64,000 bases of DNA from Malacoraja senta (taxonomy: Eukaryota). The notes under the pieces were generated by a model. The model ran no database searches. It was not told the DNA's origin and saw only the letters and a program-made list of their open reading frames with translations. The DNA lies in contig CM075995.1 in the NCBI GenBank assembly GCA_038087875.1, positions 558,001 to 622,000 of the forward strand, in the 5' to 3' direction. This document shows, piece by piece, positions 1,600 to 33,311 of the stretch. The stretch's first letter is position 1; each line of letters opens with the position of its first letter. A program made the position numbers and the translations under genes.

Positions 1600-1717
1600 C
1601 TCCTGTGCAACTCTTGAGTAATGCGCCTTTTCTCTCTTCATTTTTCCTCCAGCTCCTCCAGACACAAGGCCATTAGTTGCATGAGAAACAGTTGCTTGAT
1701 ATGAGCAGCTTGTGTCA
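1600..1717 (-). CDS. NUP153: NUP153 coding exon 11 (DTSCSYQATVSHATNGLVSGGAGGKMKREKAHYSRVAQE)
   Basis: NGL..G.GGKM(K/R)RE motif; 118 nt; TAG acceptor and GTTAG donor; the gene continues beyond the left window edge. Confidence 0.9.
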
Positions 1718-1829
1718 CTACAATACAAATAAAAAGGGAGAAAGTCTCGGAATTGCTGATTAGAGAATGATAAAATATTTCAAAATGCCTGTCTGCAATA
1801 AACCAATGCTGGAATTGCAGGTAACATAC

Positions 1830-1885
1830 CTTTTTGTTGCTTGAAGGCTTACTTCAGAAGGTACAGGCGACTTTTCCTTTAGTCT
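1830..1885 (-). CDS. NUP153: NUP153 coding exon 10 (RLKEKSPVPSEVSLQATK-S)
   Basis: Poorly conserved sequence, but the CAG and GTATGT sites and the 56-nt length bridge phase 0 (exon 9) to phase 2 (exon 11). Confidence 0.75.
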
Positions 1886-2544
1886 CTGTAATCACAAACC
1901 GATGGAATTTAATTCTTGGACTTAATATTTTAATTCTAATTCTAACTTTTTTAATTTCTTAATAGTATTTTTAGCTTTGGCTGGGCCCAAGCACTTTTGC
2001 ATGTTTTTGAATGACAACTGTTCAATGCTAATGACACTTTGTAATGACTTATTCCTCTATTTAAACTATTTTCTATAATTCAGAATTTTCCTATTACATA
2101 ATGATTTTACAGAGTTCAACAGAGTAAAGTGAAATATATATTTTAATAGTGCCACTGGATTTGCTTTAGAGACAGAACATTTCATTAACCATGTCAGAAA
2201 TCACACAACCCAACCAAAACTGCAGAGAAATCATTGGGTCAAATCCCAGATTTTTACTAATCACCTCCATTATCAAACTGGTGGGAGCAAAGTATTATTT
2301 TATTCAGATAATATTAAGAGAAAATAATAAATTACCAGATAAATGAGCAGCACTGATTTTAAGCAGCAAAAAAAGTTAAATCCCATGGTGTCTATTTCAA
2401 ATTACTATAAATTATTTTAACATGTTGGTTAGCATAGATTAGAAATATGAAAAATAATAAGCATTCATTAATTAGCAGCAAAAACTGATTAAGCTGTTAA
2501 ACAGACAACACAAGGAAATTTTAAAAGTAAGATTAATTTCTTAC

Positions 2545-2685
2545 ATTGTTTCGGACTTCAGTCTTGTTAATATGTCTATTACTCTGCCATCCGGGGGTAA
2601 GAGATGGCTTGTAAAACATGGATCTATTTGCTGTAACAACTGTAGGAGTCTGAAGTTTCTGGACAGGAGGAGACTGGGTTTCTAC
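2545..2685 (-). CDS. NUP153: NUP153 coding exon 9 (VETQSPPVQKLQTPTVVTANRSMFYKPSLTP...)
   Basis: PPVQ.L.TP and NRS..(F/Y)KPSLTP motifs; 141 nt; canonical sites. Confidence 0.92.
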
Positions 2686-3509
2686 CTGAAAATAAAAGTA
2701 GGAATTTATAGATTAACATCATTTTTAATTTAGCTACGAAGTTAGACCCAAAATGCTAGAGAAAAGGAATAAGTAGCGTTTTGGGTCAGCTTCTTCAGAC
2801 CAATTCATTTAGCTACATTTGCAACTACGTCATTATGCATCAAATTCGTAGCCATGAATTCTAAATGCTGTTTGCTGTGGAAATATTTGAAAGTACCAAA
2901 CAATATCCACCAAGCAAACTGAAAATAAGCAGCTATAAGTTTACAAAAAACAAAATCTGTAGTACAGTGGCAGCCCTTCTTCCCAAAGCCCTTCTCCTTC
3001 CTTTTGCCAAATCAAGCATGAAATGGTTTACTGTAGAAACAGCGCAGTATTGTACGTGGACAATTGAACTACTTTTGCCCAGTAACAGCTGACTATACTG
3101 TCAACAGTTGCTCTGGCAGGATTGCGCTTTTGCAACTTAAGCTCATTTGGCCTCTGTTGCCACTGCCCTATTCCACATCACAGCTGCAGCACTCAACGTA
3201 TTATGAGCACTGTCAAGCCTTTCAAGCAGGTATCTACACTGGCATGCTGCAAGGGGCGATGCTGTATGGAAGCAGATGTTTTCAATATCATCAGTCAAAC
3301 AGAAACATTTATAGAGGCCATAACCAACACAAGACTTTCTTTCACTTATGTACAAACTAGATTATTCAACGATTGCACACAACCATTTTATTTCTATTCT
3401 TCTGCTCCTTTAATAGATTTATCATTGATGTTTGCTTGGCAAAAACACTTAAAACTATAAACACTATATTTCATCCTAGTCTTTAATCATCCGTTGCATT
3501 TGGATAGGG

Positions 3510-4675
3510 ATGATCAGTACAGCTTTGTGCATGGCAAATCATGTCTCATCAATATAATTCAGTTTTTTTTTGCATTCACTTATAATTAAGAAGTGAATAA
3601 GAGGATTGACAAGGGAAGAGCGGGAGACATTATCTACATGGATTTTAGCATGGCCTATGACAAGGCATGGCAGACTGGTCTGGGAGGTTATAGTCGGGGT
3701 CACTCAGCGTGGAAACAGGCCCTTCGGCCAAACTTGCCCATGCCGACCAACATGGACCATCTACACTAGTCAATCCTATCTGTTTTTGGCCCATATCCCT
3801 CTAAACCTATTCTATCCATGTACCTGCCCAAATGTTTCTTCAAATGTTGCGATAGTATCTGCCTCATCTACCTCCTTCGGCAGCTCGTTCCATAAACCGA
3901 CCCCACCATTTGTGTAAAAACGTGGCCCATATGGTTCCTATTAAATCTTTCCCCTCTCAACTTAAACCTATGTTCTCTGGTTTTTGATACCCCTACTTTG
4001 GGTAAATGAATCTGTGCATCTACCCGATTTATTCCTCTCATTATTTTATACACCTCTATAAGTTTATTCTTATCCTCCTGCGCTCAAAAGAATAAAGTCC
4101 CAGCCTGCTCAACCTCTCCCTATAGTTCAGGGACAATATATTACAGTTGTACCAAAAGTTGGTTGGACCACATTTGGAGTGTTTTATGCAGTTCTGCATG
4201 TCAGGCATGTCTTATTATAATAAGGATGATATTAAACTAGAGAGGGTGCAAAGGAATTTACAAGCATGTTGCTTGCATTGAGAGCTTGAGTTATAAGAAG
4301 AGATTGAAGATAGGAATGAAGGAAACCAAACAAAGATTTATAAAATGATGCGGGGCATTGATTGGGTATACACAGTCTTTGTCCCACGGCAGGGAAGTCT
4401 AAGACTAGATGGCTTAGGTTTAATGTGAGATGGGGAACATTTAAAGGGGATATGAAGAACAAATATTTCCACACAGAAATATATGGCAGATATGGAATGA
4501 GCTGCCAGAGATGGCGGTAGAGGCAGGTACAACTACAACCTTTAATAATCATTTGAACAGGTACAGGGATATGAAAGGTTGAGAGGGATCTGGTTCAAAC
4601 TCGGAGAAACAAGATTAGTTTAGATGGAAGAGTTTTGCTGCGGGGTCTATTTCCATGCTGTATTATTCTATGACT
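3510..4675. mobile_element. Old + strand CR1 remnant interrupted by a - strand CR1 3' fragment (about 3690-4130)
   Basis: CR1 C-terminal motifs on both strands. Confidence 0.7.
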
Positions 4676-4825
4676 ATACAAGATTAAATATTTAACTTAC
4701 GGCCAAACATTTCAAACATGCCCTAATTAAAAGATACAAGAGCACAAGCTTCTGTACGAAAATAAATTGTCTAAGTAATATCTTGAAATCACATTTTTAG
4801 ATTTGTAAAGGTTCATATATAATAC

Positions 4826-4879
4826 CTTTCTCATCTTGGACTGCCACCCAGTCAGATCTATGGTACTTCTCTCCAAAGG
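4826..4879 (-). CDS. NUP153: NUP153 coding exon 8 (PLERSTIDLTGWQSKMRK)
   Basis: Resembles the mammalian PLDRSGIDITDFQAKREK segment (recalled); 54 nt; ttcag acceptor and GTATT donor. Confidence 0.87.
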
Positions 4880-5545
4880 CTGAAGCAAAATTAACATTGT
4901 AAGTATTAGCAAGAGTTTTAAACGATCATTAAATAATAATTGCATACAAACAGGAGGGAGAAGAGAGTAAAACTTGCAGAATAAGAAAAACAGTTAATAA
5001 AATGATTTTTATACTTGTCAAAGTGTTTGCCAAAATCTGCCTACTTTTAAAATGTCAGCTTTAAACCAGGTATTTTTTTGCTTTGAAAGATTTGTGTACA
5101 ATAATCAGGAATAGGCTTTTTAAAATTTAAAAAGAGCTTCCTTCCACTGCAGCTTTTATGAATTTTCTGCTTCTTACTTAGTGAGAAATGGAGTTCTATT
5201 AACTTATCTTTTGGACTATTTTGAAGCATTTCAATGACTGTGTGTACAATTTGCAGCACATTACTTGAATGGAAGCATTAGTAAAGAGCTATTCTGATCC
5301 TCAGTGCATTTAAAAGCACTTTACAAACAACTAATATAGGCTCATTATTACAATATTCCATCATAAAAACTCTGAGAAGGTGGAATTTATACATGACAAA
5401 ACGTACATTATAATGATTTGGTATCTTTCATAAATTTAACAAAAGTTATAAATCACAACTCATCTCAAAACAAAGTTTGCCAACAGCTATTGAGTCAATT
5501 AATTCCAAAGTCTGAACTGTTCATCAATAACTTTTTTCCACTTAC

Positions 5546-5590
5546 CGTCGATATTGGAGATTCTGCTGCAGATGGAATCCTTTTAGCATC
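5546..5590 (-). CDS. NUP153: NUP153 coding exon 7 (DAKRIPSAAESPIST)
   Basis: DAKRIP continues SPLA from exon 6; 45 nt; tttcag acceptor and GTAAGT donor. Confidence 0.92.
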
Positions 5591-5785
5591 CTGAAATCAC
5601 AATACATCAGATGCTACAAGGTTTTATACTTCACTATTTTTATTTTTCATTCCCTTCGCCTTTTATATTTCTTTATATCAATACCCAATGGTGTCACCTA
5701 CTGATATCACTGAATGGCAACTCACGTACTGTCTGGACAAAGTCTCATGTACTCAGTCTGCCTATTTCTTTCATTCAGTACACAA

Positions 5786-6076
5786 TTTTAGTTTAGTTTA
5801 GAGATGCAGAACTGAAACAGGCCCTTCGGCCCACCTAGTCCATGCCGACCAGCGATCCCTGCACATTAACATTATCCTACAAACACTAGGGACAATTTTA
5901 CCGTCAATTAACCTACAAACCTGTACGTCTATGGAGTGTGGGAGGAAACCGGAGCTCCCGGGGAAGACCCACACAGTTCACAGGTGGAACATATAAAAAA
6001 GGAACAGGCAAGCACCCACAGTCTGGATCAAACCAGGTCTCTGGCGGTGTAAGGTAGCAACTCCACCGTGCCGCCA
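5786..6076 (-). mobile_element. tRNA-derived HE1/V-SINE-like SINE
   Basis: A/B-box-like head, central ggtttcctcccacac core, CR1-like tail, (ctaaa)n end. Confidence 0.8.
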
Positions 6077-6856
6077 TAAAGGATCCCCAAAGATTCAAAA
6101 TGGAAAAGACGTCCAGGAAACATAATATTTTATAGTAACATTTAAATTAATGTTCGTGTAACTAATAAACTCTCCAGAGATGCTGCCTGCCCCGCTGAGT
6201 TACTCCTCAACGAACATTAATTAATTTTTTTTCTCAAGCTGCCAACTAGGGCTTGAACACAATGTTTTGATGATCAGTGTAAGAAGAATGAATGAATACT
6301 TTATTCTCATTATAACATGTAAACATGTACAATGAAATTTAAAATGCCAACCAGTCAGTGCACCATTCACACATTATCTAAAAGCTAACGATACGTAAAA
6401 GAGAAATGTCTAAAATAAACAACTAAAATAAATAACATGAAAAAAAAAACAAGCATAAAGCATAAACTGCAGATGCTGGTTGTGACCCTCTGAAGAAGGG
6501 TCACGACCCGAAGCATCCTTCTCTCCAGAGATGTTGACGGTCCTCTTGCTTTTTGTGTCTATATTTGTTTTGATGATCAGTTCTTTTACTGAGCCAAGAT
6601 TGTCCCCTCATCTATATTTTTATTCTATCCAGTTGAAATGAACATTCCTAAACATTGTGCCGGCTCCAGGAGTGAATGGCACTCATTTTGCAGGAAAACA
6701 AAACTACCTGATAGCACAAAAATAAAACACAAAGTGCTGGAGGATCTTTAAAAGATCAACCCATGTTGAAAAGATTTGCCAATGTCAACATCAAACAAAC
6801 TTTAAAAAAATTAAACAGTACAACAAATATCTGAAATTCAAACTATGAGAACATAC

Positions 6857-6973
6857 TGCCAAGGGACTCGACATCTTTTCTAAAGACTGGAGAATGCGTC
6901 TGGCTGTGGCACTTGTCACTCCATAAGATGTTGAACTTGCTGGTTTTGCTTTCATCCGTCTCCTTATTGGAAC
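6857..6973 (-). CDS. NUP153: NUP153 coding exon 6 (VPIRRRMKAKPASSTSYGVTSATARRILQSLEKMSSPLA)
   Basis: TARRILQSLEKMSSPLA motif; 117 nt; TAG acceptor and GTATGT donor. Confidence 0.96.
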
Positions 6974-7117
6974 CTAGGGTTCAAAAATATCAGAGTTTAT
7001 TTCAACAATGCTTCAGGATACTATTCATTTCTGTGGAGAAAGAGAGCAGAGCCAGGAAACGCATTCCACCTCAAAAATTGATCATAATCAAAATCAAAAG
7101 CATGAAATAAAGTATTT

Positions 7118-7340
7118 GTAGGAAGGAACTGCAGATGTTGGTTTAAACCGAAGATAGGCACAAAAAGCTGGAGTGAACACAGCGGGACAGTCACGATCTC
7201 TGGAGAGAAGGAATGGGTAATATTTCGGGTCGAGTCCTTTCTTTAGTCTGAAGAAGGGTTTCGACTCGAAACGGTACCCATTCCTTCTCTCCAGAGATGC
7301 TGCCTGCCTCGCTGAGTCACTCCAGCATTTTGTGTCTATC
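7118..7340. mobile_element. Palindromic Penelope-derived element
   Basis: Two inverted tail copies meeting at about 7246. Confidence 0.8.
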
Positions 7341-8871
7341 TCTGCATGGAATATCTACATCTCTCAGTGCCTGCCACAAGCATAAATTTGACATATTCTA
7401 TTACTACAGATAGGAGTAAGAACTTAAACGGAGCCAAAGTAGACTTGCGTCCGATTAAGCCAATTTTCAAGGATTAGGCGAAAAAATGTAGTTGAAGTAC
7501 AGAACACAGGCTATTCAGCCTCTTGTGGGTTCAAAATGATCACGATCGATCTTTGCATCACCTTCCTGCAACAACCCTAAATATCTTAATACCTAAACAT
7601 TTTAATGATCCCAGTTTTAAATATATTTAGAAATTCACTCAAGAAATGTCAGCCTGGAAGAAATGTCCACAATGTCAAACTGCTTCAGAACTTGCATCAA
7701 TCAAAGCACTTGTGAGAGTTTGTGTACTTATCTTGCCAGCTGCCAACTGAAAACTCAGTGCAACTTGTGCTGAAAACAAAACAAGAACTAAAACCACAAC
7801 AGTAATGAGTTGACAGGCAGCGAACAGATGGACTGATCACTGGAGGCAAGAAATTGAATCCTGCCAATATGCTGCGTAACAGACTGACTTGGCACATAAA
7901 GTGTGACATATCACCACTCAGTGCAAGACAAATCGGGAGAAAATGGAAAAAGCTGTGCAGCAATTTACTCACCATGGTTACAAAATAATAACTGTTGCCT
8001 TTCCGATCTGCTTACATGTGAAGCAGATTTAAAACAAGTTTGGGCAAAAATCCGTATAGAATATTGTTTACGTTCTAATGTCGATAGATACATTTACAAG
8101 GGCAACACAGTGACAGAGATGCTGCCTTACAGTGCCAGAGACCCGGGTGACTGACCACTGGTGCTGTCTGTACAGAGTTTGTACGTTCTCCCTGTGGGGT
8201 TTTTCCTGGGGCTCTGGTTTCGTCCCATACTCCAAAGACGTACAGGTTTGTAGGTTTGGCTTTGGTAACATTGGAAATTGTCCCTAGTGCGTAGGATAGT
8301 GCTAGAGAATGAGGTCATAAGGTCAAAAGTGATTAGCAGAATTAAGTCATTCGGCCATTAAGTCTACTCCGCCATTCAATCGTAGATAATCTATCTCTAC
8401 CTCCTAACCCCCATTCTCCTGCCTTCTCCCCATAGGTGAAGAGGCCACACAGGTGAAGAGTATACAATTCAGTTATTCAGTGGAATGGGTGCTGATGAGA
8501 TCAACAGGATGCTACCCAGGCTTGCGGGCTTATGTTACAGGGAGAGGTTGCATCGGCTGAGATACTTTTCTTTTGGAGCGTAGAAGTTCTCCTTAATTGA
8601 GGTGCACAAGATCACGATGGACATGGATTAAGTAAACGCTCAGGCTTTTTCTCTGGTCACAGGAAACAAAAATAAGGGAGCTTAAGTTTAAGATGAGAGG
8701 GGTGAGATTTAAAATGGACTAATGGCACAACTTTTTTTTCCATTTTGAGGGTAGTCTGTATCTGGAATGCGCTGCCAGAAACTACAGCAGAGAATCAATT
8801 ACGATTTTTAAAAGCCATTGAATAAATATATGGATAGGATAGGAAGAGTTTAGGAGGGATTTTTAAATTTT

Positions 8872-9178
8872 ATTTTAGTTTAGAGATACAGGGTGGAAAG
8901 AGGCCCTTTCAGCCCACCGGGTCCGCGCCAACCAGCAATCCCCGCACCTTAACACTATCCTATACCCACTTAGGGACAATTTTTATATTTACCAAGCCAA
9001 TTAATCTACATACCTGTACGTCTTTGGAGTGTGGGAGGAAACCGACGATCTCGTAGGTAACCCCCGCAGGTCACGGGGAGAACGTACAAACTCCATACAG
9101 GCAGCCCCCGTAGTCAGGATCGAACCCGGGTCTCTGGCGCTGCATTCGCTGTTAGGCAGCAACTCTCCCGTGCCACCA
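8872..9178 (-). mobile_element. HE1/V-SINE-like SINE inserted into a CR1 tail
   Basis: Same family; the CR1 tail resumes at 9179. Confidence 0.8.
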
Positions 9179-9769
9179 AGGGATGTGTGCTAAATGCAGG
9201 CAAATGGGACTAGTACAGTACAGCATGGTCAGCATGAACAGGGTGGGCTAAAGAGCATGTTTCCATGCTCTACGACCTCCCCTGGCTGATCTCCACCCCC
9301 CTGATCCTCGTGCCTTTCACAAACCTCTCCTGTCTGCTCCACATCACCCATTTTTGTCCTCCTTCCCCTCATTCTACTTACTTCACCAAAAAGACCACCG
9401 GCTACGGGAGTCAAGATCATCCCGTTAACAGGGGCTCGAGGCCCCTGACCAAGGAAGAACACAAGGGAAGGACTTGAACTTTATTTCGCCTTCCATCACA
9501 GTGAGGAATGTGTAGGAGTCACTGTGGTGGATGTTCATATTAAAATGTGTTTTTGAGTCTGTTGCTTTTAATTGTATGACTGACCTGGCCAATGAAACTC
9601 CTCGTATGTTGCAAAACATACTTGGCGAATAAAATCTGATTCTGATTCTGATTCACAAACAGTTCATCCACACTCTTCCTCCCCATGCCAGCTCCTGGTT
9701 CTATCCACCACTCACCCTAACATCATCACCTTCCTTACTTATCAGATTGTAGCACTGGCAGCCTTTAGT

Positions 9770-11616: not shown

Positions 11617-11745
11617 CTGATACGGTGTACCTCGCATTTGAGGAGTCCTTCCTGCTGCTGCAGCTCCACCATATGTAGTCTTGCCAGGGTAGAAAGGGGA
11701 ATCCCCAAATTGGCTTGTATTTAATAATGACGTACTAATAAAAGA
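11617..11745 (-). CDS. NUP153: NUP153 coding exon 5 (SFISTSLLNTSQFGDSPFYPGKTTYGGAAAAGRTPQMRGTPYQ)
   Basis: SPFYPGKTTYGGA signature motif; 129 nt; canonical splice sites. Confidence 0.96.
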
Positions 11746-11832: not shown

Positions 11833-11972
11833 TGGAGGCGAACTTCCGAAAGCTGAGAGATTAAAAGATGGCCTTTTCAGGCTTGTAGCGGGTTGTTGGG
11901 GGACTGACTGAAAGCGGTCCCCCTCTGGAGACCACAAGGGCGGTAAAGAAGCATTCCTTGAAGTTATCACAT
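11833..11972 (-). CDS. NUP153: NUP153 coding exon 4 (DVITSRNASLPPLWSPE...RPSFNLSAFGSSPP)
   Basis: LPPLWSPE and FNLSAFG motifs; AG acceptor and GTAAGT donor; 140 nt, phase 1 to 0. Confidence 0.95.
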
Positions 11973-13627: not shown

Positions 13628-14027
13628 ACATTTCAGTGACTCAGGTATCTTTTCTCAATGGTACAGAGTAACACCCAAAATTCTAAATGAGGCTTAACCT
13701 GCACATTAAACACAAATTTACAGGCTACGACTGGTAATGTACAGGTCACGCCAGTGAGAGGTTTCTACTATTCTCAATAAATGTATTCCAGGCCTGCTGG
13801 CAAAATCAAGTAGAGCAGGCAGAATTCGTAAAGGGAGTAAATTAATTACATCTTTCACATAGATAGGCATCGACTCTACACTTTAAAACTTAACCAACAA
13901 ATGCCATGTGACCTTATCGATTATACTAAATGACCGAAGTACAATTTTATCAAAAGCTATAATATGCTTCCACAAGTTACACAAAAATCGTATTTTTCAA
14001 AGGCAATATTTATGAGGAATCTTTTAC

Positions 14028-14282
14028 CTTTATCAGAGGCTCTGGAAGAGAAACCACTTGTTGTAGAGATGTTATCATCTTCATGCAGAGAACCAGTGTC
14101 TTTGATTTCCTTTACCAGTGAGAATCCTGAATTGCCAATGGGAAATGAAGCGGACGTGGATGGTTGACAATCATGTGCTGGTGTATCTACTGCCGCACAA
14201 TTAAAGTGTGTTCGATGAAGAGCGGGTCGCAGTAGCAGCATGTCCGAGAAATTTAAAGCAGTTTTGCTTGATGGTGGGCTGA
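14028..14282 (-). CDS. NUP153: NUP153 coding exon 3 (...CQPSTSASFPIGNSGFSLVKEIKD...NISTTSGFSSRASDK)
   Basis: Strongly conserved Nup153-family segment; tttttttacag acceptor, AAG|GTAAA donor; 255 nt keeps phase 1. Confidence 0.96.
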
Positions 14283-16692
14283 CTGTAAAAAAATGAGAAA
14301 TGAGGTTATCATCTAATCACAGACACAATTCAATGTGAGCTTGCATATTTTAGTTTCCTCTTCAGGTCATGAATTATCACAGACCTAAGAGAACCAAAGT
14401 TAACATGAATGGAAAATGAACATTTCAAGGTATAACATCCATAATTTCACATGACGTAAGAGCAGACCTAGGCTATTCGGCCTATTGAGCCTGCTCCACC
14501 ATTCGATCATGGCTGATCTATTTATCCCCTCTCAATCCCATCTTCCTGTCTTCTTCCTGTAAACTTTGACACCATTACTAATCAAGAACCTATCTAGTTC
14601 TCCACTTTTACTTGTTTGTGGAACAGAAGCAGATTCGGACAAACAGGATTAAGAGCTTTGGAACGGATGGATACAGAAGTAACATGCAAAACATATGTTC
14701 AATGGGAAGTTACTTCAAGTGTCTTTGTGTGGATGAATAAAGTCACGCAGAAATGAATTGAACAGATAAACCTATAAATATCACGACAATCCAATTGCAC
14801 AAATGAAAAGTTTAGGAACCGAATTAAAAGAAACGTGGCGAAAATCAGAACAATATTAAAACGCATAGTACAATATGTACTGGTGTCAAGAAAAATTCTT
14901 TAAATATGAACAAGAAAATAGAAGCAGGAGCAGACCAGTTGGCTCCTCGTGCCTGCCTTGCAATTCCATGCCTGCTCCCCAAAATGGAAACTGAATTAAT
15001 AGAAAAGGGACAGCTATGTTTCCGTCAGTTCTTTGATGCACACAACTCAGGTGAATACCAAGTTGGTAAGAATGAAATGAATGACAGTAAGAAAAATCAA
15101 CTAATTTTAGGAAAAGAAAAGTAACAGGGACAAATTTAAGTCATAGAGTTGCACAGCACAGAAATAGAAAATATGCCACCGCGCCGACCTTTTTGCCCAT
15201 ATATACTAATCCTATTTGCCTGAATTAAGACTAAATCATCAATGTCTTGCCTATGTAAATGTCTGTAAGTTAATTGATGTGTTGGACAGAATTTTAGTGG
15301 AAGTGGTTTGAAGGTTAGGGTCAAGAACTCAGGAGAGGAATAGATTGGGTAGAAGCACAAATTCCCCTTCCCAGGGAAACATGAACCAGAGGACATGGGT
15401 TTAAGGTGAGGGGGGGGAAGATGTAATAGGACCCTGAGCGGTAACTTTTTCACACAATGGGTGGTAGGTGTATGGAACGAGCTGTTGGAGGAGGTAGTTG
15501 AGACGAGTACTATCACAATGTTTTAGAAGCATTTAGACAGGTACATGGATATTATAAGTTTGGGGGGATATGGGCGAAATGCAGGCAGGTGGGACAAGTG
15601 TAGATGGGACATGTTGGCCGGCGTGGGCAAGTTGGGCTGAAGTGCCTGTTTCCACGCTGTGAGACTCTATAACTGCTTTACGGTGATGTTGGAATTAGGC
15701 AGCAGCACCCCAGAATTTTCTGTTCATTATGCGCATCAATGATTTAGATACAGAATTTGCAGAGGGGTGTTCAGAAAATAGTAATTAACATATTGAGAAA
15801 TGAAAGATGTTGTATATGACCTTATAACCTGATTTAAGAAATCAAAGAACACAAATTCTTCAGTACACTTTTCAAATTAGTAATATGTTTCAAGGTATTT
15901 ATTAATATATGTTCCATTGGAAACAGGGCAATGGAATGCAGAAATTAAAAGGCAGATTAAATCCTACATGATGAAAGTGGGCTTGCTTGAGCTGTGGTTA
16001 CAGCAGCGGTGCATTCTGGATCAAAAAGGCAAAGGTCAGATCTCATTGGGCCTGACCAACATAACATTGTTTGCCAATGGTCTCCAATGAATCATACTGC
16101 TGGGAACACTCTGTATGGTGGAACAACTATGTATTGGACAGTGCAAAGTAAGTCTCTGCCTAACTGCTCCTTTCACAATTCCCATGTACCTTGAGACCAT
16201 AGACAATTATAAACCGAAAAAACCCACAGCTACTTCATTCAACTTAATTAAAACACACATAAAAGCTAAGAAGAGCACTTACAATTCACACATTTTATTG
16301 AAGACCTGTCGCCTCATTTGAAAGAGCAGGGGTATGATAAATATGCCCACCATGACAGCATAAAACAGAGGAATGTATCTGGCCCCTCAGCGAAGGCAAT
16401 TTAAAACACTCCTGTATTCAATGGCAGACCAGTGACACAGCAAGAGGACAGCTACTTGGTAGATCAACCTGGCTTAAAAATTTGAAAGGACCTGGGAAAC
16501 AAAATCTTACTCAATGACAAAAGCACACTTGATGGCTGAGTGACATAGTCCTGCTCCTGATTCATATGTTTGGTACTTTCAATACAAAGATTGACACGAA
16601 AGAGCGGGGCTGTTATTGGAGAAGAGGAGACAGATTATTTTGATACAAGACTTTTAAGCAAAGCTGGTATGGCTCGAAATAGATATAAATAC

Positions 16693-17835: not shown

Positions 17836-18040
17836 CTGCTGTATTGTTGGTTGCAGATGTTGAATTATGTCTTCTATTATCAAATAGCAGGGTCTCATTT
17901 ACAAGGGCTGGATCATTATCATGATTGTCAATCGATCTTTTTGCTTCGACTGGTTCCACCTTGGAAGTGTGCCCAAAGTACTTCTGCAGCCATCCAGGTA
18001 CTATATTCTTCACAGTATCTGTAACTCTGCCAATGATTCC
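17836..18040 (-). CDS. NUP153: NUP153 coding exon 2 (GIIGRVTDTVKNIVPGWLQKYF...)
   Basis: RVT.TVKNIVPGWLQ.YF is the NUP153 N-terminal motif; CAG acceptor, G|GTAGG donor; 205 nt, phase 0 to 1. Confidence 0.95.
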
Positions 18041-20658: not shown

Positions 20659-21894
20659 ACTTACTTCAGATAGGCGAAAACGAGAAGCTGGTGTGATTTG
20701 GGTGGGGGAGGGATAGAGATAGACAGAGGGAACGCCGGGGCTACATGAAGTTCGAGAGATCAATATTCATACAGGCCCATACTAAGCTTTTCAAAAAGGG
20801 GGGTGGCATGACAGGATTACAAAAAATGTTTATGTGCGCAAGTGAAATGTGAAGTCCCTCGTGGCTGGGGTTCTAGATGCTCTGGGGTTTTAGATGCTCT
20901 CTGGTGTCTTCTGAGCCTTATTTTGGAGCATTTTTGCACCAAATTTATGATCAATATTTCAGAAATAATTTTGGTTGAGTCAAGAGTAATGAGCGGGTGA
21001 ATGGGATGATTGGGGTCATTGTTGGATACATTTTTTTAAATCAAGAATTGTAGTTGTCCTTGCTTAAATAATCAAGTTGTACTGTTGTAAAATGTTATAA
21101 AGGAGCATGCAAAACTGCAAATAAAATACTGTAACTTTTAGAAAATGTTTTTGTGTGTTGATTTGATTGCCTGTTACTGTTCGACTGAGTGTGTGCAGTG
21201 AACCTTTAATGGTCCTTCTGACCTAATTGCAGAGTTGCCAAGTTTCACCGAGCGTTTCCGTATTTTGATGGCTGAAAATCAGTATTTTGTTGAGGAAATC
21301 GGTATTTCGCACATAAATGCAATACTACACAGAAACTAGGTTTTTGAAAATGTATTTTGCATGCAACCTCATGTATTCTCAAATATCAGTATGGAATACT
21401 GAAAATCAGTACCACTGAAATGTGAAACCATTTTTGAAATGTGAATTTATAATTCTTGATTTTGATTCAATCGTATCCTTATAACTATAAAACTCTGATC
21501 TTGGATGTGTGTTTGTGTGTATTTATTTGCTTGTGTGTTTCCACATCTTCTCGAAAAAACGACACGCGAATGGGAATTTTTTAAACATATTCTGGTAGAG
21601 ATTTACCCCCAGGAGTCCCAAATCAGCTTACCTGAAAATGTTGTGCTTTATTTCTTGAGTTATTAATAAAAATGTTCACAAATCGAATCAAACTTTGAAA
21701 TCAAAACGCCTGTTTTTCGCTGATGACGTGACAATGGATCTGCCTGCCTGCCGTCTGCTCGCAATGCGACTGGCGTCACCTCCCACCCATCCCTCCTCCC
21801 CCCATTGTTCAAAAGTCGCCCTGTCGACTGAAGACCAAAGATCATAGCTGAAGACTGCGTCGGCCCAACCAGCGCTCCTTTGGTCGATCGCACC

Positions 21895-22087
21895 TCGGCT
21901 CTCTCACCCTCCCCTCTCGGCTCAGGCCTCCCCCCACCTCTCTACCCCCCTCCCACCTCTCTACCCCCCTCCCCTCTCTCTCCCCCCCCTCAGCTCCGCT
22001 ACTCCCCCCTCTATCTCTCCCCGCCCTTCTCTCTCCTCCCCTCGGCTCAGCCCAGGCCTCCCCCCCTCTATCTTCCCACCCCCCCCT
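21895..22087. repeat. C/T-rich low-complexity tract
   Basis: Poly-pyrimidine tract with a repeated cctctctaccccc unit. Confidence 0.8.
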
Positions 22088-22869
22088 TCGGACGGTCATG
22101 TCACACCACTGGGCTGTAAACTGCCGAAACGAAATGAGATGCTGTTCCTCCAATTTGCATTTAGCCTCACTCTGACAAGAGGAAGAGATCTAGGACAGAA
22201 AGGTCTGTGCGGGAATGGGAAGGAGAATTAAAGTGTTTAGCAACGGGAGTTCAGGTATGTTCAGGCAGACTGAGCGAAGGTGTAACACCTTCATGCCCAA
22301 GTTTATAATTTGTTTTTCTGCCTCCCAGCCTACTTCTATTTACTTCCAATGGATTCATGCGTTGTGAGCTCAGTTAACGTTTTTCAGCTACATCCAGTCA
22401 TTCTTTTGACATGCATCAAAGTTATAGAATAGATGTGCTTTAAACATTTTGTTAATAAAGTGTCTTCAAATAGAAATGAACACTTGAATGTCTTCAATGT
22501 ACTGCACACAATTTTCTTGGGTTCAGTTTTGTCTTTGATTAGTTGAATATATAACACTATATTTGCATCAATCAAAATCTTTAATTCAAGCTTAAAGTAC
22601 AATCACTAGATTTCCCACTGAATTGAGCAAACACCCTCGACCACTGCTACGCATCCATAAAGGCCTACCATTCCACTCCTCAGCCACATTTCAGGAAATC
22701 TAATCACCAAGCTGTGCTTCTACTCCTTGCCTACAAACAAAAACTCAAGCTGAAGAAAAGCAAGATCTCAAGCCGGAAAGGGTGCAGAGAAGGTGCATGC
22801 ACCAAGAAACACAAGTAGCAAATGTAAATTTTGTGTTGATTTATTTACTATTGACATACAAATTTCATG

Positions 22870-24262: not shown

Positions 24263-24265
24263 CCC

Positions 24266-25455
24266 ATTTGGAATTTTTTGAGGATGTAACTAAGAAATGG
24301 GACAAGGGAGAGCCAGTGGATGTAGTGTTCCTGGACTTTCAGAAAGCATTTGATAAGATCCCACATAGGAGATAAGTGTGCAGAATTAGGGCACAGGGTA
24401 TTGGGGGTAGAGTGCCAACATGGATAGAAAATTGGTTGGCAGATAGGAAACAAAGAGTATGGATTAACGGGTCGCTTTCAGAATGGCAGGCAGTGACTAG
24501 TGGGGTACCGCAAGGCTCGGTGCTGGGACCACAGCTATTTACAATTTTAATGATTTAGATGAAGGGATTACAAGTCACATTAGCAAACTTGCAGATGACA
24601 CAAAGCTGGGTGGCAATGTGAACTGTGAGGATGCTATAAGAATGCAGGGTGACTCGAACAGGTTGCAGTTCAATGTGGATCTGGCCAACCAAGGATAAAT
24701 GTGGATAAATGTGAGGTTATCCAGGAAGGCAGATTATTATCTAAATGGTGTCAAGTTGGGAAAAGGGGAAGTACAACAAGATCTGGGGGTCCTTGTTCAT
24801 CAGTCAATGAATGTAAGCATGCAGGTACAGCAGGCAGTAAAGAAAGCGAATGGAATGTTGGCCTTCATAACAAGAGTTGAGTATATGAGCAAAGAGGTCC
24901 TTCTGCAGTTGTACAGGGCCCTAGTGAGACCACACCTGGAGCATTGTGTGCAGTTTTGGTTTCCAAATTAGAGGAAGGACATTCTTGCTATTGAGGGAGT
25001 GCAGCGTAGGTTCACAAGATTAATTCCCGGGATGGCGGGACTGTCATATGCTGAGAGAATGGAGCGGCTGGACTTGTATACTCTGGAATTTAGAAGGATG
25101 AGAGGGAATCTTATTGAAACATATAAGATTATTAAGGGGTTGGACACGCTAGAGGCAGGAAACATGTTCCAGATGTTGAGGGAGTCCAGAACCAGGGACC
25201 ACTGTTTAAGAATAAGGGGCAAGCCATTTAGAACGGAGATGAGTAAACACTTTTTCACTCGGAGAGTTGTGAGTCTGTGGAATTCTCTGCCTCAGGTTCT
25301 GGAGGCTGGTTCTCTGGATACTTTCAAGAGAGAGCTAGATAGGGCTCTTAAAGATAGCGGAGTCATGGGGATATGGGGAGAAGGCAAGAACGGGGTACTG
25401 ATTGTGGATGATCAGCCATGACCAGTATGAATGGTGGTGCTGGCTCAAAGGGAAC
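24266..25455 (+). mobile_element. CR1/HER1-like LINE, 5'-truncated (RT C-terminus + tail)
   Basis: LDFQKAFDK; [11 protein letters not shown]; LYRALVRPHLE; FTRRVVSLWNSLP. Confidence 0.9.
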
Positions 25456-28400
25456 CTAGCATAGTCACACCCTACTGCTCCAAAGGCACAGCAATAAGAT
25501 AGTAATGCAGTTATTGGTCAAGTCTTCATTTGCTTCTCTCAACCTCAAATTGAGTTGTATTGCTTACTTTCCATTTTTCCTGCAACCTCTCATTCCTTTC
25601 ATTCATCATTTCCCCCAACCCCTTCTGCCTTTCCTAATTTCAAGAATCTGGTTATAAAATTTACCCTTGGATGGCCAGATCCACATTCAACCAGAAAAAA
25701 CTCGAGGGAAAATGAAGTTTCCCCCCCCCTTGACAGGAAGAAACTGAGATAAACCCACGGTAACAAACAGAATACAATAGAAAATTCTGAAAATCGTGAC
25801 AAGAAATTAACATATTGAATAGAACATCTTACTGGAGCATGAAATTTAGTACTGCAGCCTGAGAAAATCAGAATTTATGAAATGATGCCTCAAGATGAAC
25901 CTTATTGTTTACTATCCTGCAGTATAACCTTCAGCTTTTCACCAGTTACTCTGTATAAATGTCCTTGGTAATGCAGCTAAAAAACCCAACTTAGAGATGA
26001 TTTAACACAGAAAACATTTTTTTCTTCAGAGACAAAAGCCACAAATGAATCCAAGCCAAAGAAGCCTGATCCAAGAGCATGGCTTTCAAACAACAGCTAT
26101 TGGAGATAGTTAGAAAGGGACTTGAAAAGGATAAAAGCTAAATAACGGAGGACTCAGCGGACAATAATATGACAAAGAATATCCCAACCTCATTGACAAC
26201 AGTTAAGGGAAATGTTATTATTAAAATGGGAAACATTAACAGAGGTAGCAATACAGCTTAAAGTGGGATCCACGTAAGATGATCAGGAACAAAATTAATG
26301 ACAGGAAGAAAAGGATAGAAAACATAGGTGTGTCTGATTGAATGTTGCTGGTGAAGGTAGGAAATTTAGCTCACAGTAGTAATCGTAGCCGACGTAACAA
26401 TCAGCCCATTTTAACCAGATTGAGATTAGTTTAATATTGTGTACACCTGGGTGCAATCAAATTCCTTGTTCACATGAAGCTCGCAGAGTGAACAATAGTG
26501 ATAAATACAACAAATGCAAAACAGCAGAATGGCGCAATATTGTTGTGAAAAAAATATTAAAACAATAATGCAGCAACTGAATCAGGGCCAGCTAAAATTT
26601 GACAGCATTTCCAGGAAGGAGGTGTGAAAGAGGATATTGGTTCAGGAATCTGATAGCAGTGGCGAAGAAGCTGGACGTCCAGGCTCTCAACTCCTATATC
26701 TTCTCCCAGAAGATAAAATACTGTGGCCCATCCACAATTGGCAGTTGAGAAACAGAGGATGCAAATGGCTGAGTTGGGTATTGTTGGCAAACAAGTGGAA
26801 AATGACATGCCTAATGTCACCTATATGTAGTGGAAAGATAATAAAAAGCAAGTCACCATATACAAATACTCTGAACCATCTGACAATGTTTCAGAATAGA
26901 AGCCTAAAGTCAGTGATATGCTGTCGACAAATATATAAGAATGGAACCCAGGCTTGTGTAGTTCTAATTTCCTTAATTCTACTGGTAGCCGATGAACCTT
27001 GTCCTAAGCTTGGGAATTCCTTTCACAAACCACTGAATATTCCTCTCCTGAAGACCTTTGATACTACATCCTTCAGGCAATGTTAAGTTTCATCTACTGA
27101 AGCTCCTGCAAACAAACTTGTGGTGTCTTATCGCCGAAGAGGCAGTGCACATTCGGAACAGGAGAAGCAATGGGCCATTTACCCTTGATGTATAATTCCA
27201 CCAATCAACAAAATAATGACTGAACTGCTTATTCAATGTGTTCATGCATTATTCCCAGATCCCTCAATTCCTTGAACAAACTGTAAACTCTGCCTGACTG
27301 ACCTTGCACTGTTCCCTCGGGTAGAAAGTTCCAAAGATTTTTCTAATTTCAGTCCTAAATGTACTACCATTCAATCTAAGGCCTTGGTTTCAGATTTTCC
27401 AGCCAATGGATGCAAACCTCTTGGATTTTTGTATGTAGCAATGAGGTTATACCTTATTCTTATAATTTTTAGGGCACAGAAGTAGAACCCAATCAGTCTC
27501 TCCTTATATGGCAGATAGCAACCAATCTAGCGAACCTTCCTGCCCACTCTCTATTACAAGTACATTCTTTAGATGCAAATATAAACATTGCAAGGTTATT
27601 CCCAAATAAAGTTTTAAGACCTGCAGCAGAACCTGTATACGTCTAGTACAGAATGACAATTGTTGGTCTGCCAGGTATCAAGAGATCGGTAGAAGAACAA
27701 GAGGTGGCACTGCAAATGGCACTCTTAAAAATAGCGGAGTCAGGGGATATGGGGAGAAGGCAGGAACGGGGTACTGATTGGGGATGATCAGCCAATAGCC
27801 AAAAGGCCTACTCCTGCACCTATTGTCTATAAATGGAAGGAATTTAACAAATACATGGGATTTCTATATGATATAAACACATAAATTTTACATATGCAGC
27901 AAATGTTACTGAATGCCTTACTTTACGCAATTTGTTTTGGTATTACTGTCATGTGCATAATACAATGAAACACCTTGATGGGATGCTATGCTATCCAGTT
28001 AAATCTAACTGTACATGAGTACAATCATCACACACAAGAACACAGGTAGTGCACAGAGAAACATATTAAAGTGTAGATTATAATGTTGCAGTGTTATGTT
28101 TCATTACACAGATATAAACACAAATCATATTTATAAGCTAGATAAGTAACATTCTACTCGGACAGCAAAGATATCAGTACACCTGACTTGAGTCCAGAGG
28201 GACTGAGAGCAAATTTACTTAAGCCAGTCTAAGGATTGATAGGGGGAGTTGACTTGATGGGCCGAATTGCATAATTCTGATCCTATCACTTATAAACTAA
28301 TGTTATGGGTACCCGTTTCACTTTATAAGCAATCCAAGATCTTCTCAAGTAAAAATGTTTAATAAAAACCAATGTCCCAAAAATAAAACTAGACATATAT

Positions 28401-29593
28401 CAGAAACAGTAGTCATAATAACACACAACATGCAAATCTTCTCTGCACTCTTTCCATTTTAACGTCATTTTCCTGTAGCAGGGACTGAACACATTACTCC
28501 ATATGCTGCCTTAGCAATGTTTTGTGCCACTGTAACATAATATCACAACTTCTACTATCCCTGACTAGTGAAGGCCAATGGATACAACGGAAGGCCTTCT
28601 TGACCACCATATTTACCTGTAATGTCGCTTTCAGGTAATGATGTACCTGCACACCTAGATCCCTCGGCTCTGCAACACTCCCAATAGTCCCAAGCATTAA
28701 ATTACATTGACCATTCCTCAGCCCACTTGCCCAACTGATCAAATTCTTGGTGTGATATTTCAATAATGAGATTTGCTTTAAAAATCGGGCAGGTGATCGA
28801 AAATGTAATTTACATTTTTTTAAATCATGCTACAATATTTAGTTATTTAATAAAGCATAGAATGAACATTAAGAAGAAAAGCTGATCTGTTTACTGTACA
28901 TATGTATAATTCAGAATAAAAACATTTGGCGATAATCTAGCACTGGTTCTCAGAACAGAAGAGCAAAGAATTTTTTTAAATTGTAGGAGGGGGGGGGGGG
29001 TTCATATTAAAAAAAAACTAGCTTTCAAGTAGCAGCAAGTCAGAGCGTTGTAAAATATGTGGCGTTAAAGAAGTACTCCATCAACTCCGCGCCAAAACAC
29101 CCCCCCCCCCCCCCACACACGAGGACATGCTGACAGGAAGGGAGAATTGGGAGCAGCCTTAGCCCGTAGATAGACACAAAATGTTGGAGTAACTCAGAGG
29201 GACTGGCAGCATCTCTGGAGAGAAGGAATGGGTGATGTTTCGGGTTAGGGGAGAGGGGGACTGGTGGCATGGAAAGGCCGAGGGCCTGCAACCGGGGGAG
29301 GTGAACAAGGCCGGGAGAAGATCGCAGAGCGGAACGAGGTTTGATCGGGAGGAGGTCGGCGAGGTGGCCCCTGCCCTCCCCTCTTCATCCACAAACCCAG
29401 TAGCCAGCGGCACCCCTCCCTCCTTTCTCCCGCTCCTGCTGTTGTCGACAGGCCCGGCTGCTCAGCGTTCCCTTGAGGTAAAGGCAAGGCCTTGCCGACT
29501 GCCAGCACCAGGCCGCGGATCACACACAACTCCGCCGGCGCCACCGCCATTTTTGTTATCGATCCCTGCAAACCCGGCCGCCGGTTTCCTCAC

Positions 29594-29677
29594 CTGGTTC
29601 TTGGCGTACGGTTTGCTGATGATGTGGTGCCGCTTGTTTCTGATTTTACCGCCGCCGGCACCTCCTGCCGCCGCCAT
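29594..29677 (-). CDS. NUP153: NUP153 coding exon 1 (MAAAGGAGGGKIRNKRHHIISKPYAKNQ)
   Basis: ATG at 29677 in AAAATGGCGG context inside a CpG island; GGGKIR..H...KPY matches the NUP153 N-terminus; donor CAG|GTGAGG; 84 nt, phase 0. Confidence 0.93.
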
Positions 29678-29796
29678 TTTGCGGCTCTCTTTCCCGGCCG
29701 CTGCTGCTCGCGCCGCTCTCTGTCTATCTCCTAGCAGCCGGGAGGTTGGGGGGGGGGAGGGGAGGGAGGAGGGGTGGAGGGAGGGGGGAATTCCCG

Positions 29797-30424
29797 CAAC
29801 ACACGCTTCACCCCCCCGCGTCCGCGTCACACCGCTCGCTATCACCGCCAAGCAGTCGGGAGATGGGGGGGGAGGGGTAGGGGTTCGTGCTTCACCCCCC
29901 CGCGTCCGCGTCACACCGCACGCACGCTCGCGCAGCTCTCCCTCTCTGGAGGGGGAGGGGCACAGTGGTTGGGTGGGGAGTTGGTAGTCACGCCTACGTC
30001 ACACCACAACGCGCGCTTCACCCCTCCCCCTCTCCGTCTGCGTCACGCCGCCCACTCGGAAGGCGTGGGGAAGGGGTTGACGCTCTCAACGTCACGCTCC
30101 GACCCGCCCTTTTGCCGCAACGTGCGCTTCACCCCACCCCCCCCTGCGCACGCCCGTCTGCGTCACAACGTGCGCCTGTGCCGCTCTCTCTGGAGGGGGT
30201 GGGGGAGCGGCTCACGCTCTTACGTTACGCTCTGACCTGCCCTTCACCGCCCGCCTGCGCCGCGTTCTCTCTCTCTCTGGAGGGGGAGGGGAAGGGTTCA
30301 CGCTCTTACGTTACGCTCTGACCCGCCCTTTCCTCCTCCCCCCACACAACGTGCGCTTCACCCCTCCGCGTCCGCGTCACATCGTTCGCCCGCGCGCAAG
30401 CGCAAACACCTTCCCTCCGGGGGG
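29797..30424. repeat. Degenerate GC-rich tandem repeat (about 85-120 nt units) upstream of NUP153 exon 1
   Basis: Recurring GCTTCACCCC...CGTCAC units; perfect 26-nt repeat TCACGCTCTTACGTTACGCTCTGACC at 30212-30237 and 30298-30323. Confidence 0.75.
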
Positions 30425-30444
30425 CTTTTTTTTCCCCCTCCCTC

Positions 30445-30644
30445 NNNNNNNNNNNNNNNNNNNNNNNNNNNNNNNNNNNNNNNNNNNNNNNNNNNNNNNN
30501 NNNNNNNNNNNNNNNNNNNNNNNNNNNNNNNNNNNNNNNNNNNNNNNNNNNNNNNNNNNNNNNNNNNNNNNNNNNNNNNNNNNNNNNNNNNNNNNNNNNN
30601 NNNNNNNNNNNNNNNNNNNNNNNNNNNNNNNNNNNNNNNNNNNN
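30445..30644. other. Assembly gap, exactly 200 N
   Basis: Run of N with a round length typical of an unsized scaffolding join. Confidence 0.99.
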
Positions 30645-30910
30645 TGTTCGCCAGTATGGGCGAGTTGGGCCAAAGGGCCTGTTTCCACACTGTATCACTC
30701 TATAATGTGATCATATGTTTGTTTACAAAGACATTTGGTTGAAACAGTAATGTCCTTGCTAAAAATTAAGAACTGTTTTAATGCCTGAACAATTAATTAT
30801 TATAACTGTTGCTAGTAATCCAGAGACTACTTGATAATTCTATGATGTACTGTTTGGTTCTTCCTAAAAGCAGTAACTGCTGTAGAGTAACTTGAATGTT
30901 TAATATGCAG

Positions 30911-31073
30911 GTAACAACTTCCAGTTTGGAAACAGTGGACCTAGTTTTAACTTCAGTGCCACCAATTCATCAAATGAGGTATTTCAGTTTGGAATGGCTT
31001 CAACAGGAGCACCCCAGCCGGCTGCCCCAGCCAGCGGCTTTCAGTTCAATCCAGCTCCTACATTTCCCGCTGG
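30911..31073 (+). CDS. NUP153: NUP153 penultimate coding exon (FG-repeat region: NNFQFGNSGPSFNFS...VFQFG...GFQFNPAPTFPAG)
   Basis: FxFG repeats; atgcag acceptor, GG|GTAAGA donor; joins the terminal exon in frame. Confidence 0.88.
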
Positions 31074-31204
31074 GTAAGAACCTCAATACGAAGTGTGAAC
31101 ATTTTCTGAAGTGAATGAGTGCTTCTCTGAAGTTTTCTTCATGCTTTACACCAGCTACTTAATAGTGTGAAATAGGATATTATCAAAGTAATACATTTAC
31201 AATC

Positions 31205-31585
31205 GTATACTGTACACTGCAAGGGCCAGGAAGCGAGCAGGCAAGATCATCTCTGACCCCTCTCACCCTGGCCACAAACTCTTTGAATCACTTCCCTCTG
31301 GAAGGCGACTCTGGATAGTCAAAGCTGCCACAGCCAGACATAAAAAACGTTTTTATCCACGAGTAGTTGCTCTACTCAACAGCCAAAAATCTGTAGCCTC
31401 CCTTTGATCTGGTATTTTGTTGGTTCACATGCTTGATCAATAGTGTTTTATCATTAATGTTTTATTATTATTAATGTTTTATGTGTCATTCCTAACTGTC
31501 ACTATGTCATGTTGTTACTTGTGGGTGGGGCACCAAGGCAAATTCCTTGTATGTGAATACTTGGCCAATAAACTTACTTACTTAT
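31205..31585 (+). mobile_element. Rex1/Babar-like LINE 3' end
   Basis: ARARKRAGKIISDPSHPGHKLFESLPSGRR; tail ending aataaacttacttactt. Confidence 0.7.
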
Positions 31586-31589
31586 AGTG

Positions 31590-31753
31590 TCAGACACAAA
31601 ATGCTGGCGTAACAGGCAGCATCTCTGTAGAGCAGGAATGGGTGATGTTTTGGGTCGAGACGAGGCTTCTTCAGTATAAAGGGTCTTGACCCGAAACGTC
31701 ACCCAGTGATGCTGTCTGTCCTGCTAAGTTACTCCAGCTTTCTGTGTCTATCT
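31590..31753. mobile_element. Palindromic Penelope-derived element, partly deleted
   Basis: gacacaaaatgctgg ... ccagctttctgtgtc inverted ends. Confidence 0.7.
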
Positions 31754-32244
31754 TGGATATCTATTAGTAAGGCAATATTTGATTTACTTACCTATTAACT
31801 TAATGTTCTCATGGTGGTTAACAAATGGTGCATAATCAGTAAGTAATTAGAAATTAGTGCAATTAGAAATTAGAAATGTAATTAGTAATTAGAAATTAAA
31901 TGATCCAAAAAAAAACGTGAAGCTACTTGATTGTTTGCAGTCAGGCATCCATGTTCATTGCGTTCATGTTGTCTGAAGCAGTAAACTTGCAGATGGTTGT
32001 CAGGTGAGTAAGTGGTTTGACTGCTCAGTTGGCGAATTGTATTTGCCTGGTGTATTTCTCAGCATGAAACAAAATCTTCAAGAAAGCATGAAATGTTGCT
32101 GTAGGTCAGATTTAAATTTTCAGGGTTTAAATTATTTTATTACCAAACCACAAGACCTAAGTTTTCCTTCCTTCAGGTTTCAAAACCTCGCAATTTAAAT
32201 GAGATTTGAAATAAAAATCTTGACTTTTGAATTTGTCATACTGC

Positions 32245-32705
32245 CTTTTCGCCCAATTAGCCCATGCCGGCCCACATGCCCCATCTACACTAGTCCCACC
32301 TGCCAACGGTCAATAACCCTCTAAATCCTTGGTCCTTGGTCCTTTCAAGAGAGAGCTAGATCGGGCTCTTAAAAATAGTGGAGTCAGGGGATATGGGGAG
32401 AAGGCAGGAATGGGGTACTGATTGGGGATGATCAGCCATGATCACATTGAATGGCTTGAAAGGCCAAATAGCCTACTCCTGCACCTATTGTCTACAACCC
32501 TCTAAACCTATCCTGTCCATGTACATATCCAAATGTCTATTAAATGTAATGGGAGTACTACCTCCTCCGGCAGCTCGTTCCAAACACCTACCGACCTTTG
32601 TGTAAAAAGAAAGTCGCCCCTCAGGTTCCTATTAAATCTTTCCCTCCTCACTGTAAACTTATGTCCTCTAGTTCGCGATTCCCCTACTCTAGGCAAAAGA
32701 TCGGT
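32245..32705 (-). mobile_element. CR1 3' fragment with a nested + strand CR1 tail (about 32342-32495)
   Basis: PRVGESRTRGHKF...WNELP on the minus strand. Confidence 0.75.
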
Positions 32706-32847
32706 GCCTTTTTCCCCAATCTATTCCAAACTAATTGGATTACTTGAAGCCTTGTGGTTATAATGAGTTCCGTTTACCTGTGTGTAAATTTTGGGGGGAA
32801 TCAACAGCAAGAATAACAGTGCCAATGTGAAGTTGATTTCAAAAACA

Positions 32848-33132
32848 GTGGAGTTGCTGCCTTACAGTGCCAGAGACCCGGGTTCGATCCCGATTACGGG
32901 TGCTGTCTGTACGGAGTTTTACGTTCTCCCCGAGACCGCATGGGTTTTCTCTGAGATCTCGGTTTCCTCCCACATTTCAAAGACGTACAGGTTTGTAGGT
33001 TAATTGGCGTGGCATAAATGTAAATTGACCCGAGTGTGTGTAGGATTGTGTATAAGTGCCCTGGGGATTGCTGATCTGTGCGGACTCAGTAGGCCGAAGG
33101 GCCTGTTTCTGCGCTGTATCGCGAAACTAAAA
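32848..33132 (+). mobile_element. HE1/V-SINE-like SINE
   Basis: gggttcgatcc B-box; core; tail. Confidence 0.8.
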
Positions 33133-33217
33133 ACACGAGCACCGGTATTTTACTCTCTACTAAGTGGTTGACATGTAAGTCGGTCAGTAACTGTTGTTTT
33201 TCTTTTCTCTTGCATAG

Positions 33218-33311
33218 GGTTGGTGCCGCCAATCCTTTTTCTGCAACGTCTGGTGGTCGTTCTGCCGTTACTGGTCGTAAGATAAAGACTGCTGTTAGAC
33301 GCAAGAAATAA
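33218..33311 (+). CDS. NUP153: NUP153 terminal coding exon (VGAANPFSATSGGRSAVTGRKIKTAVRRKK*)
   Basis: GRKIKTAVRR(R/K)K is the NUP153 C-terminal basic motif; long polypyrimidine tract plus TAG; TAA at 33309-33311. Confidence 0.93.

Follow-up and report, generated by a model that had tools for sequence, protein, structure and literature searches.

The split of NUP153 across a scaffold gap in Malacoraja senta is almost certainly an assembly error

The window analyzed here, a stretch of 64,000 nucleotides of the Malacoraja senta contig CM075995.1, holds the two ends of NUP153 on opposite strands. We compared it with the NUP153 loci of two related skates, Amblyraja radiata (L001; CM021367.1, 115787520–115867325) and Leucoraja erinacea (L002; CM054008.1, 32830711–32908853). 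When a skate NUP153 mRNA (L003) was mapped to the window, exons 1–11 fell on the minus strand, running from 29677 to 1600, and exons 21–22 on the plus strand, running from 30911 to 33311. A tblastn search with the A. radiata protein (P0056, 1437 aa) divided the gene in the same manner, with residues 1–455 on the minus strand, residues 1354–1437 on the plus strand, and no match to residues 456–1353 in the window. Exons 12–20 (mRNA positions 1880–4590), which comprise the RanBP2-type zinc fingers (PF00641) and the main FG-repeat exons, thus found no match in the window by either method. Because E-values reach 1e-47 and exon 3 matches Pfam Nup153 at E = 6e-39, the identification of NUP153 is not a chance result. 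An earlier note, made from the sequence alone, had described oppositely oriented halves of 11 and 2 exons, and tblastn and mRNA mapping reproduced its exon count and end coordinates exactly.

On the minus strand, the coding part of exon 1 (29594–29677, with the ATG at 29677) is identical in 28 of 28 residues to A. radiata and L. erinacea by tblastn, was recovered by mRNA mapping, and is followed after 29594 by a GT donor. The 5′ UTR preceding it (29678–30245), which lies within a CpG island, was placed by homology, bases 1–530 of the related skate's mRNA aligning to 30245–29678 at about 90%. Exon 2 (17836–18040) was supported by tblastn, mRNA mapping, and splice check, and mapping and splice check likewise placed exons 3 (14028–14282), 4 (11833–11972), 5 (11617–11745), 6 (6857–6973), 7 (5546–5590), 8 (4826–4879), 9 (2545–2685), and 10 (1830–1885). 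The Pfam Nup153 domain (PF08604) begins in exon 3, where its score is 134.6 bits (cut-off 25; E = 6.3e-39); the region of exon 11 (1600–1717) matches positions 310–346 of the same profile weakly. Exon 11 itself rests on mRNA mapping and collinearity with L001, its end at 1600 having been read by eye from the GT, and by the same collinearity exon 12 would be expected about 100 bases past the left edge of the window. On the plus strand, the last 266 bases of intron 20 (30645–30910; collinear with L001 from 67670 and with L002 from 66024) lead into exon 21 (30911–31073; tblastn, mRNA mapping, and splice check), which carries the last FG repeats. The coding part of exon 22 (33218–33311; tblastn and mRNA mapping) ends in GRKIKTAVRRKK followed by the stop; its match to PF10599 is weak (E = 0.014), the exon being 30 residues long. 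The 3′ UTR extends to at least 33384. All 10 introns among exons 1–11 and intron 21 have GT-AG boundaries, and an AG lies directly 5′ of exon 21.

Both halves are intact. Exons 1–11 comprise 448 codons with no stop and have a dN/dS of 0.115. Exons 21–22 show no decay and keep their FG motifs (FQFG three times) as well as several ancestral residues, and their C-terminal tail is identical in nine other cartilaginous fishes. Only 5 of the 257 bases in these two exons differ from L. erinacea, fewer than the 5.7% mismatch of the flanking alignment would give (P = 0.003). All five differences are nonsynonymous and none is synonymous, in a small sample from a fast-evolving FG stretch; judged by codons and taken alone, they do not amount to a clear sign of purifying selection. 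Left and right of the gap, non-coding sequence differs from the relatives to nearly the same extent (mismatch of 5.2% and 5.7%), which places both sides at orthologue-level distance, and at the level of sequence the two halves look like one live NUP153 orthologue.

The contig to the right of the gap also carries what reads as part of a neighboring gene of the RDD family. Its last coding exon lies within an open frame at 45415–45600 on the minus strand (ESM Atlas best cluster RDD family protein, 0.95, 83 of 100 hits), and one of its internal exons, with part of the RDD domain, lies within an open frame at 50176–50316, also on the minus strand, which matches Pfam RDD (PF06271) at E = 0.0019, short of the curated cut-off. 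To the right of NUP153, open frames of 75 aa or more contain transposon domains only, the weak RDD matches being found in shorter minus-strand frames. The RDD-family exons had no match in the PDB, and a homologue search with them returned unnamed fragments only. The gene stands tail-to-tail with the 3′ end of NUP153, about 12 kb away. We take it to be FAM8A1, a name that draws on the known gene order of vertebrates together with the RDD matches. The earlier note had pointed to the tail-to-tail order of FAM8A1 and NUP153 in mammals as matching the right contig; the RDD-family exons there are consistent with such a convergent arrangement, and the name is presumed.

The window has a single run of Ns, at 30445–30644 (200 bases), and the strand of NUP153 changes exactly there, as had been proposed. 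Coding sequence nowhere touches this gap, so the reading frame is not at issue. When compared to the A. radiata and L. erinacea loci, the left flank corresponds to sequence about 780 bp upstream of NUP153, in reverse, and the right flank to intron 20, in forward orientation and about 58 kb from the match of the left flank; the two flanks fall at about 9224 (reversed) and about 67670 (forward) in L001, and at about 9256 (reversed) and 66024 (forward) in L002. To the left of the gap, a CpG island (GC 0.68 and CpG observed/expected 0.89 over 29678–30444) continues to the contig end at 30444 and contains four to five degenerate, dispersed direct repeats at spacings of roughly 85–240 bp. The break had been described as lying in a GC-rich tandem-repeat promoter; the GC-rich island is there, but a clean tandem array is not, TRF flagging only a short G-rich repeat at 29740–29789 at this contig end. 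The right contig begins within the tail of an interspersed repeat in intron 20, a tail with nine copies in the window. Assembly is difficult in sequence of either kind, the CpG island with its degenerate repeats at the end of the left contig and the interspersed repeat at the start of the right one.

In both related skates NUP153 lies in one piece, as a full-length 22-exon model on one strand over 58–60 kb without Ns, and the layout is collinear; in M. senta, by contrast, the block of exons 1–11 is reversed relative to exons 21–22. Positions 115–30442 of the window are collinear, in reverse, with L001 39498–9224, and positions 30654–37965 run forward against L001 67670–76017. L. erinacea gave the same pattern (L002 39704–9256 reversed, 66024–75823 forward). 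Collinear alignment to the two loci covers about 28 kb of the left side and 7–9 kb of the right. Aligned non-coding DNA is about 88–92% identical between M. senta and these relatives, and intron sizes are similar. Among coding exons, 2–10 and 21–22 are 96–100% identical, whereas exon 11 is 93.6% identical and differs in length by one codon. All 14 of the other cartilaginous fishes listed have NUP153 as a full-length model. A search for a NUP153 protein or transcript of M. senta that would join the two halves found none. Of the 13 proteins in the 90% cluster around A. radiata NUP153, not one is identical to the window, and the four short ones (159–630 aa) had no match in it.

Because the break falls exactly on a gap and NUP153 is in one piece in two related skates, the split is almost certainly an assembly error rather than biology. 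We consider it probable that the error was one of orientation during scaffolding, which in its simplest form would be the flipping of a contig of about 58 kb. The assembly would have broken twice, once in the GC-rich CpG-island promoter and once in the repeat of intron 20, and the piece between the two breaks, predicted to span exons 1–20 over about 58 kb, would most likely have been joined back to front to its neighbors. Such a join would bring exon 1 up against the gap, with the last two exons facing it from the other side. On this reading the left contig would be the one that was flipped, and a second gap is predicted about 28 kb to the left of the window. The earlier note had likewise preferred an orientation error to a biological cause, a preference supported by the switch at the gap, the collinear relatives, the intact halves, and the RDD-family exons, consistent with FAM8A1, on the right contig. 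In Hi-C scaffolds, errors of orientation are known to arise from short contigs (PMC7672694). The present case resembles the local errors of the class addressed by HiC-Hiker in that a contig that is short, by prediction, and bounded by a gap is reversed; as in those errors, the gene model is broken and the result mimics an inversion relative to related genomes.

Alternatively, one could suppose that the left contig is correct and continues through its own exons 12–22, and that the right contig is a retained haplotig or misplaced piece, carrying the 3′ end of NUP153 and the FAM8A1 region, which came to lie in the wrong orientation beside the allelic locus. Scaffolders tend to put haplotigs near their allelic partners, the junction is a scaffold gap, and the start of the right contig falls arbitrarily within an intron repeat, all of which would fit. 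False duplications and retained haplotigs in diploid assemblies, which also leave partial gene copies beside scaffold gaps, nevertheless differ from the M. senta window in that tblastn and mRNA mapping found no duplicated NUP153 sequence within it. This explanation would moreover call for a retained duplicate of at least 33 kb with another gene on it, whereas the flip of a single small contig is the simpler assumption, and we regard this alternative as unlikely. Less credible by far is an old duplication from which a separate copy of the terminal exons remained next to the main gene; exons 12–22 of the minus-strand gene would then lie outside the window. We rejected such partial paralogues since the two sides are equally diverged and the right contig has the genuine downstream region: that contig is collinear with the true 3′ end of the relatives and with at least 8–10 kb of their downstream sequence, it is as diverged as the left contig, it bears the expected convergent neighbor, its exons 21–22 are without decay, and the locus of neither relative (L001, L002) contains a duplicate of this kind.

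A real inversion of about 58 kb, perhaps heterozygous, would give the layout seen in the scaffold if one breakpoint lay in intron 20, cutting before the last two exons, and the other a short way upstream of the NUP153 transcription start; heterozygosity for a structural variant could likewise be the reason for the assembler's breaks at both points. Any inversion would need to be very young, given that the two halves are intact and conserved. The breakpoint is spanned by no sequence, however, only by the gap; the two related skates are collinear, and the other 14 fishes have their full-length models. NUP153, furthermore, is widely regarded as essential. We hold a very recent inversion to be very improbable. 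That the gene was severed in this way between exons 20 and 21, perhaps in one of two alleles, is given very little credence; were it true, one allele would lack the last 84 residues of NUP153, and the breaks of the assembler at both breakpoints would be accounted for. The earlier note had thought a real inversion or partial paralogues much less likely than an assembly error, and the collinear relatives, the intact halves, and the equal divergence on both sides agree with that judgment.

An error of contig orientation in the scaffold therefore remains the reading we prefer. Its significance is limited to the quality of the assembly, and it brings nothing new on nuclear pores. The correction proposed would be a reversal of the block between this gap and the one predicted about 28 kb left of the window. 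In the present scaffold, a full-length NUP153 model for M. senta is beyond any annotation pipeline, and a comparison with other skates would yield a false inversion of 58 kb.

We found that NUP153 lies in two oppositely oriented pieces on either side of the only run of Ns in the window (30445-30644, 200 bases), a layout that is present in the file but almost certainly absent from the animal's genome. The gene was recognized from a stop-to-stop open frame at 13960-14316 (minus strand) that matches Pfam Nup153 (E = 6.3e-39) and, in a search among 1.84 billion proteins, vertebrate NUP153 proteins, named via a follow-up search that added shark, ray and skate NUP153 proteins to the matches. Amblyraja radiata and Leucoraja erinacea have the nearest proteins, most of their exon matches being 95-100% identical; the window's NUP153 differs from both and thus belongs to a different rajid skate. 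Used as a tblastn query, the 1437-aa A. radiata protein matched to the left of the gap on the minus strand (residues 1-455) and to its right on the plus strand (residues 1354-1437), and residues 456-1353 had no match within the window. A 4.9-kb NUP153 mRNA of a skate, taken from a publicly available RNA-seq assembly, which has 22 exons on the loci of both relatives, maps to the window as exons 1-11 on the minus strand (exon 1, coding part with the ATG at 29677, 29677-29594; exon 2, 18040-17836; exon 3, 14282-14028; exon 4, 11972-11833; exon 5, 11745-11617; exon 6, 6973-6857; exon 7, 5590-5546; exon 8, 4879-4826; exon 9, 2685-2545; exon 10, 1885-1830; and exon 11, 1717-1600, the 1600 end being read by eye from the GT) and exons 21-22 on the plus strand (exon 21, 30911-31073; exon 22, coding part with the stop, 33218-33311). 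GT-AG borders are present at 10/10 introns within exons 1-11 and at intron 21, and exon 21 is preceded by AG; the exon count and coordinates put forward in the earlier note agree exactly with this map.

The loci used for comparison, L001 from A. radiata (gene 59.8 kb) and L002 from L. erinacea (gene 58.1 kb), contain no N. Left of the gap, the window aligns to them reversed (115-30442 with L001 39498 down to 9224; 115-30424 with L002 39704 down to 9256), and right of it forward (30654-37965 with L001 67670 up to 76017; 30654-40337 with L002 66024 up to 75823), the two flanks being discontinuous when compared with either locus. The gap thus joins a point ∼780 bp upstream of NUP153 to one in intron 20, ∼265 bp short of exon 21; these points are ∼58 kb apart on the same strand in A. 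radiata and in L. erinacea alike. Coding sequence is clear of the gap (the distance is 768 bases leftwards to the ATG and 267 bases rightwards to the start of exon 21), so the reading frame is not at issue. Within intron 1, collinear alignment to both relatives is interrupted over a G/C-rich segment of low complexity (21666-22228), several phases of which hold long open frames.

The terminal part of the left contig is a CpG island (GC 0.68, CpG observed/expected 0.89) containing the NUP153 5′ UTR, at 29678-30245 (minus strand) by homology to the related skate mRNA, along with G-rich runs and 4-5 degenerate repeats, so that the earlier description of this end as a tandem-repeat promoter holds only loosely. 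The skate mRNA has a long 5′ UTR (∼530 nt) of GC-rich, internally repetitive sequence, ∼90% conserved in the window. The right contig begins within an interspersed repeat, in its tail; the window has nine copies of this repeat, and A. radiata intron 20 just before this starting point matches more of the window's repeat copies. An interspersed element of ∼420 bp, its copies 92-96% identical to each other, occurs once in the window (41919-42340) versus four times in or beside the A. radiata locus (L001 8219-8640, 17581-17998, 42903-43328 and 47412-47837), with none in the part of the window collinear with A. radiata intron 1; this suggests recent, lineage-specific insertions.

Further along the right contig, a putative RDD-family gene converges on the 3′ end of NUP153, their stop codons ∼12 kb apart. 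One minus-strand frame (50176-50316) matches Pfam RDD below the cut-off (E = 0.0019), and another (45415-45600), ending in a stop, falls in an Atlas RDD cluster (0.95; 83/100 hits); their direction is that of the tail-to-tail layout cited in the earlier note for FAM8A1 and NUP153. The two further searches run for this gene gave no named match; given the order of genes in vertebrates, these exons most likely belong to FAM8A1. Transposons fill much of the surrounding space, and across 33350-64000 frames of at least 75 aa carry only mobile-element Pfam domains (reverse transcriptase, endonuclease and phage-integrase SAM-like), which fit a LINE-like element near 61.8-64 kb, among others.

Both halves of NUP153 are intact. 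Exons 1-11 comprise 448 codons without a stop, with dS 0.051 and dN 0.0059 against the related mRNA (dN/dS 0.115). Exon 11 is the most diverged coding exon (93.6% identity to that mRNA) and is 3 bases, or one codon, shorter, the frame being kept. Exons 21-22 comprise 84 intact codons in which the FQFG motifs are retained, as is the basic tail GRKIKTAVRRKK, a sequence that nine other cartilaginous fishes share without change. Several of the sites at which these two exons depart from A. radiata or L. erinacea carry, in the window, the residue of more distant rays. Compared with L. erinacea, 5/257 bases differ, against a mismatch of 5.7% in the flanking alignment (binomial P = 0.003). All five differences are amino-acid-changing and none synonymous, a small blemish on the reading of a live gene, in a small sample from a fast-evolving FG stretch.

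The mapping of the gap flanks to collinear loci in the relatives, together with these intact halves, supports the main point of the earlier note, that the layout is an assembly artefact. Two partial paralogues are scarcely credible, since both pieces lie at orthologue, not paralogue, distance from the relative (non-coding mismatch of 5.2% left of the gap and 5.7% right), and a real inversion, which would be very young, is highly improbable. An artefact of another kind, such as misplacement of the right contig or retention of a haplotig, is unlikely. The simplest account, which we consider probable, is that the left contig is flipped in the scaffold: the assembly would have broken at two points, the promoter CpG island and the intron 20 repeat, leaving a ∼58-kb contig with exons 1-20 that the scaffolder would have put in reversed. 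Orientation of short contigs from Hi-C contacts is known to be hard (PMC7672694). A flipped contig predicts a second gap ∼28 kb left of the window and, from collinearity with the A. radiata locus, exon 12 ∼100 bases past the window's left edge. The split of NUP153 is thus to be read as an assembly artefact, without biological novelty.
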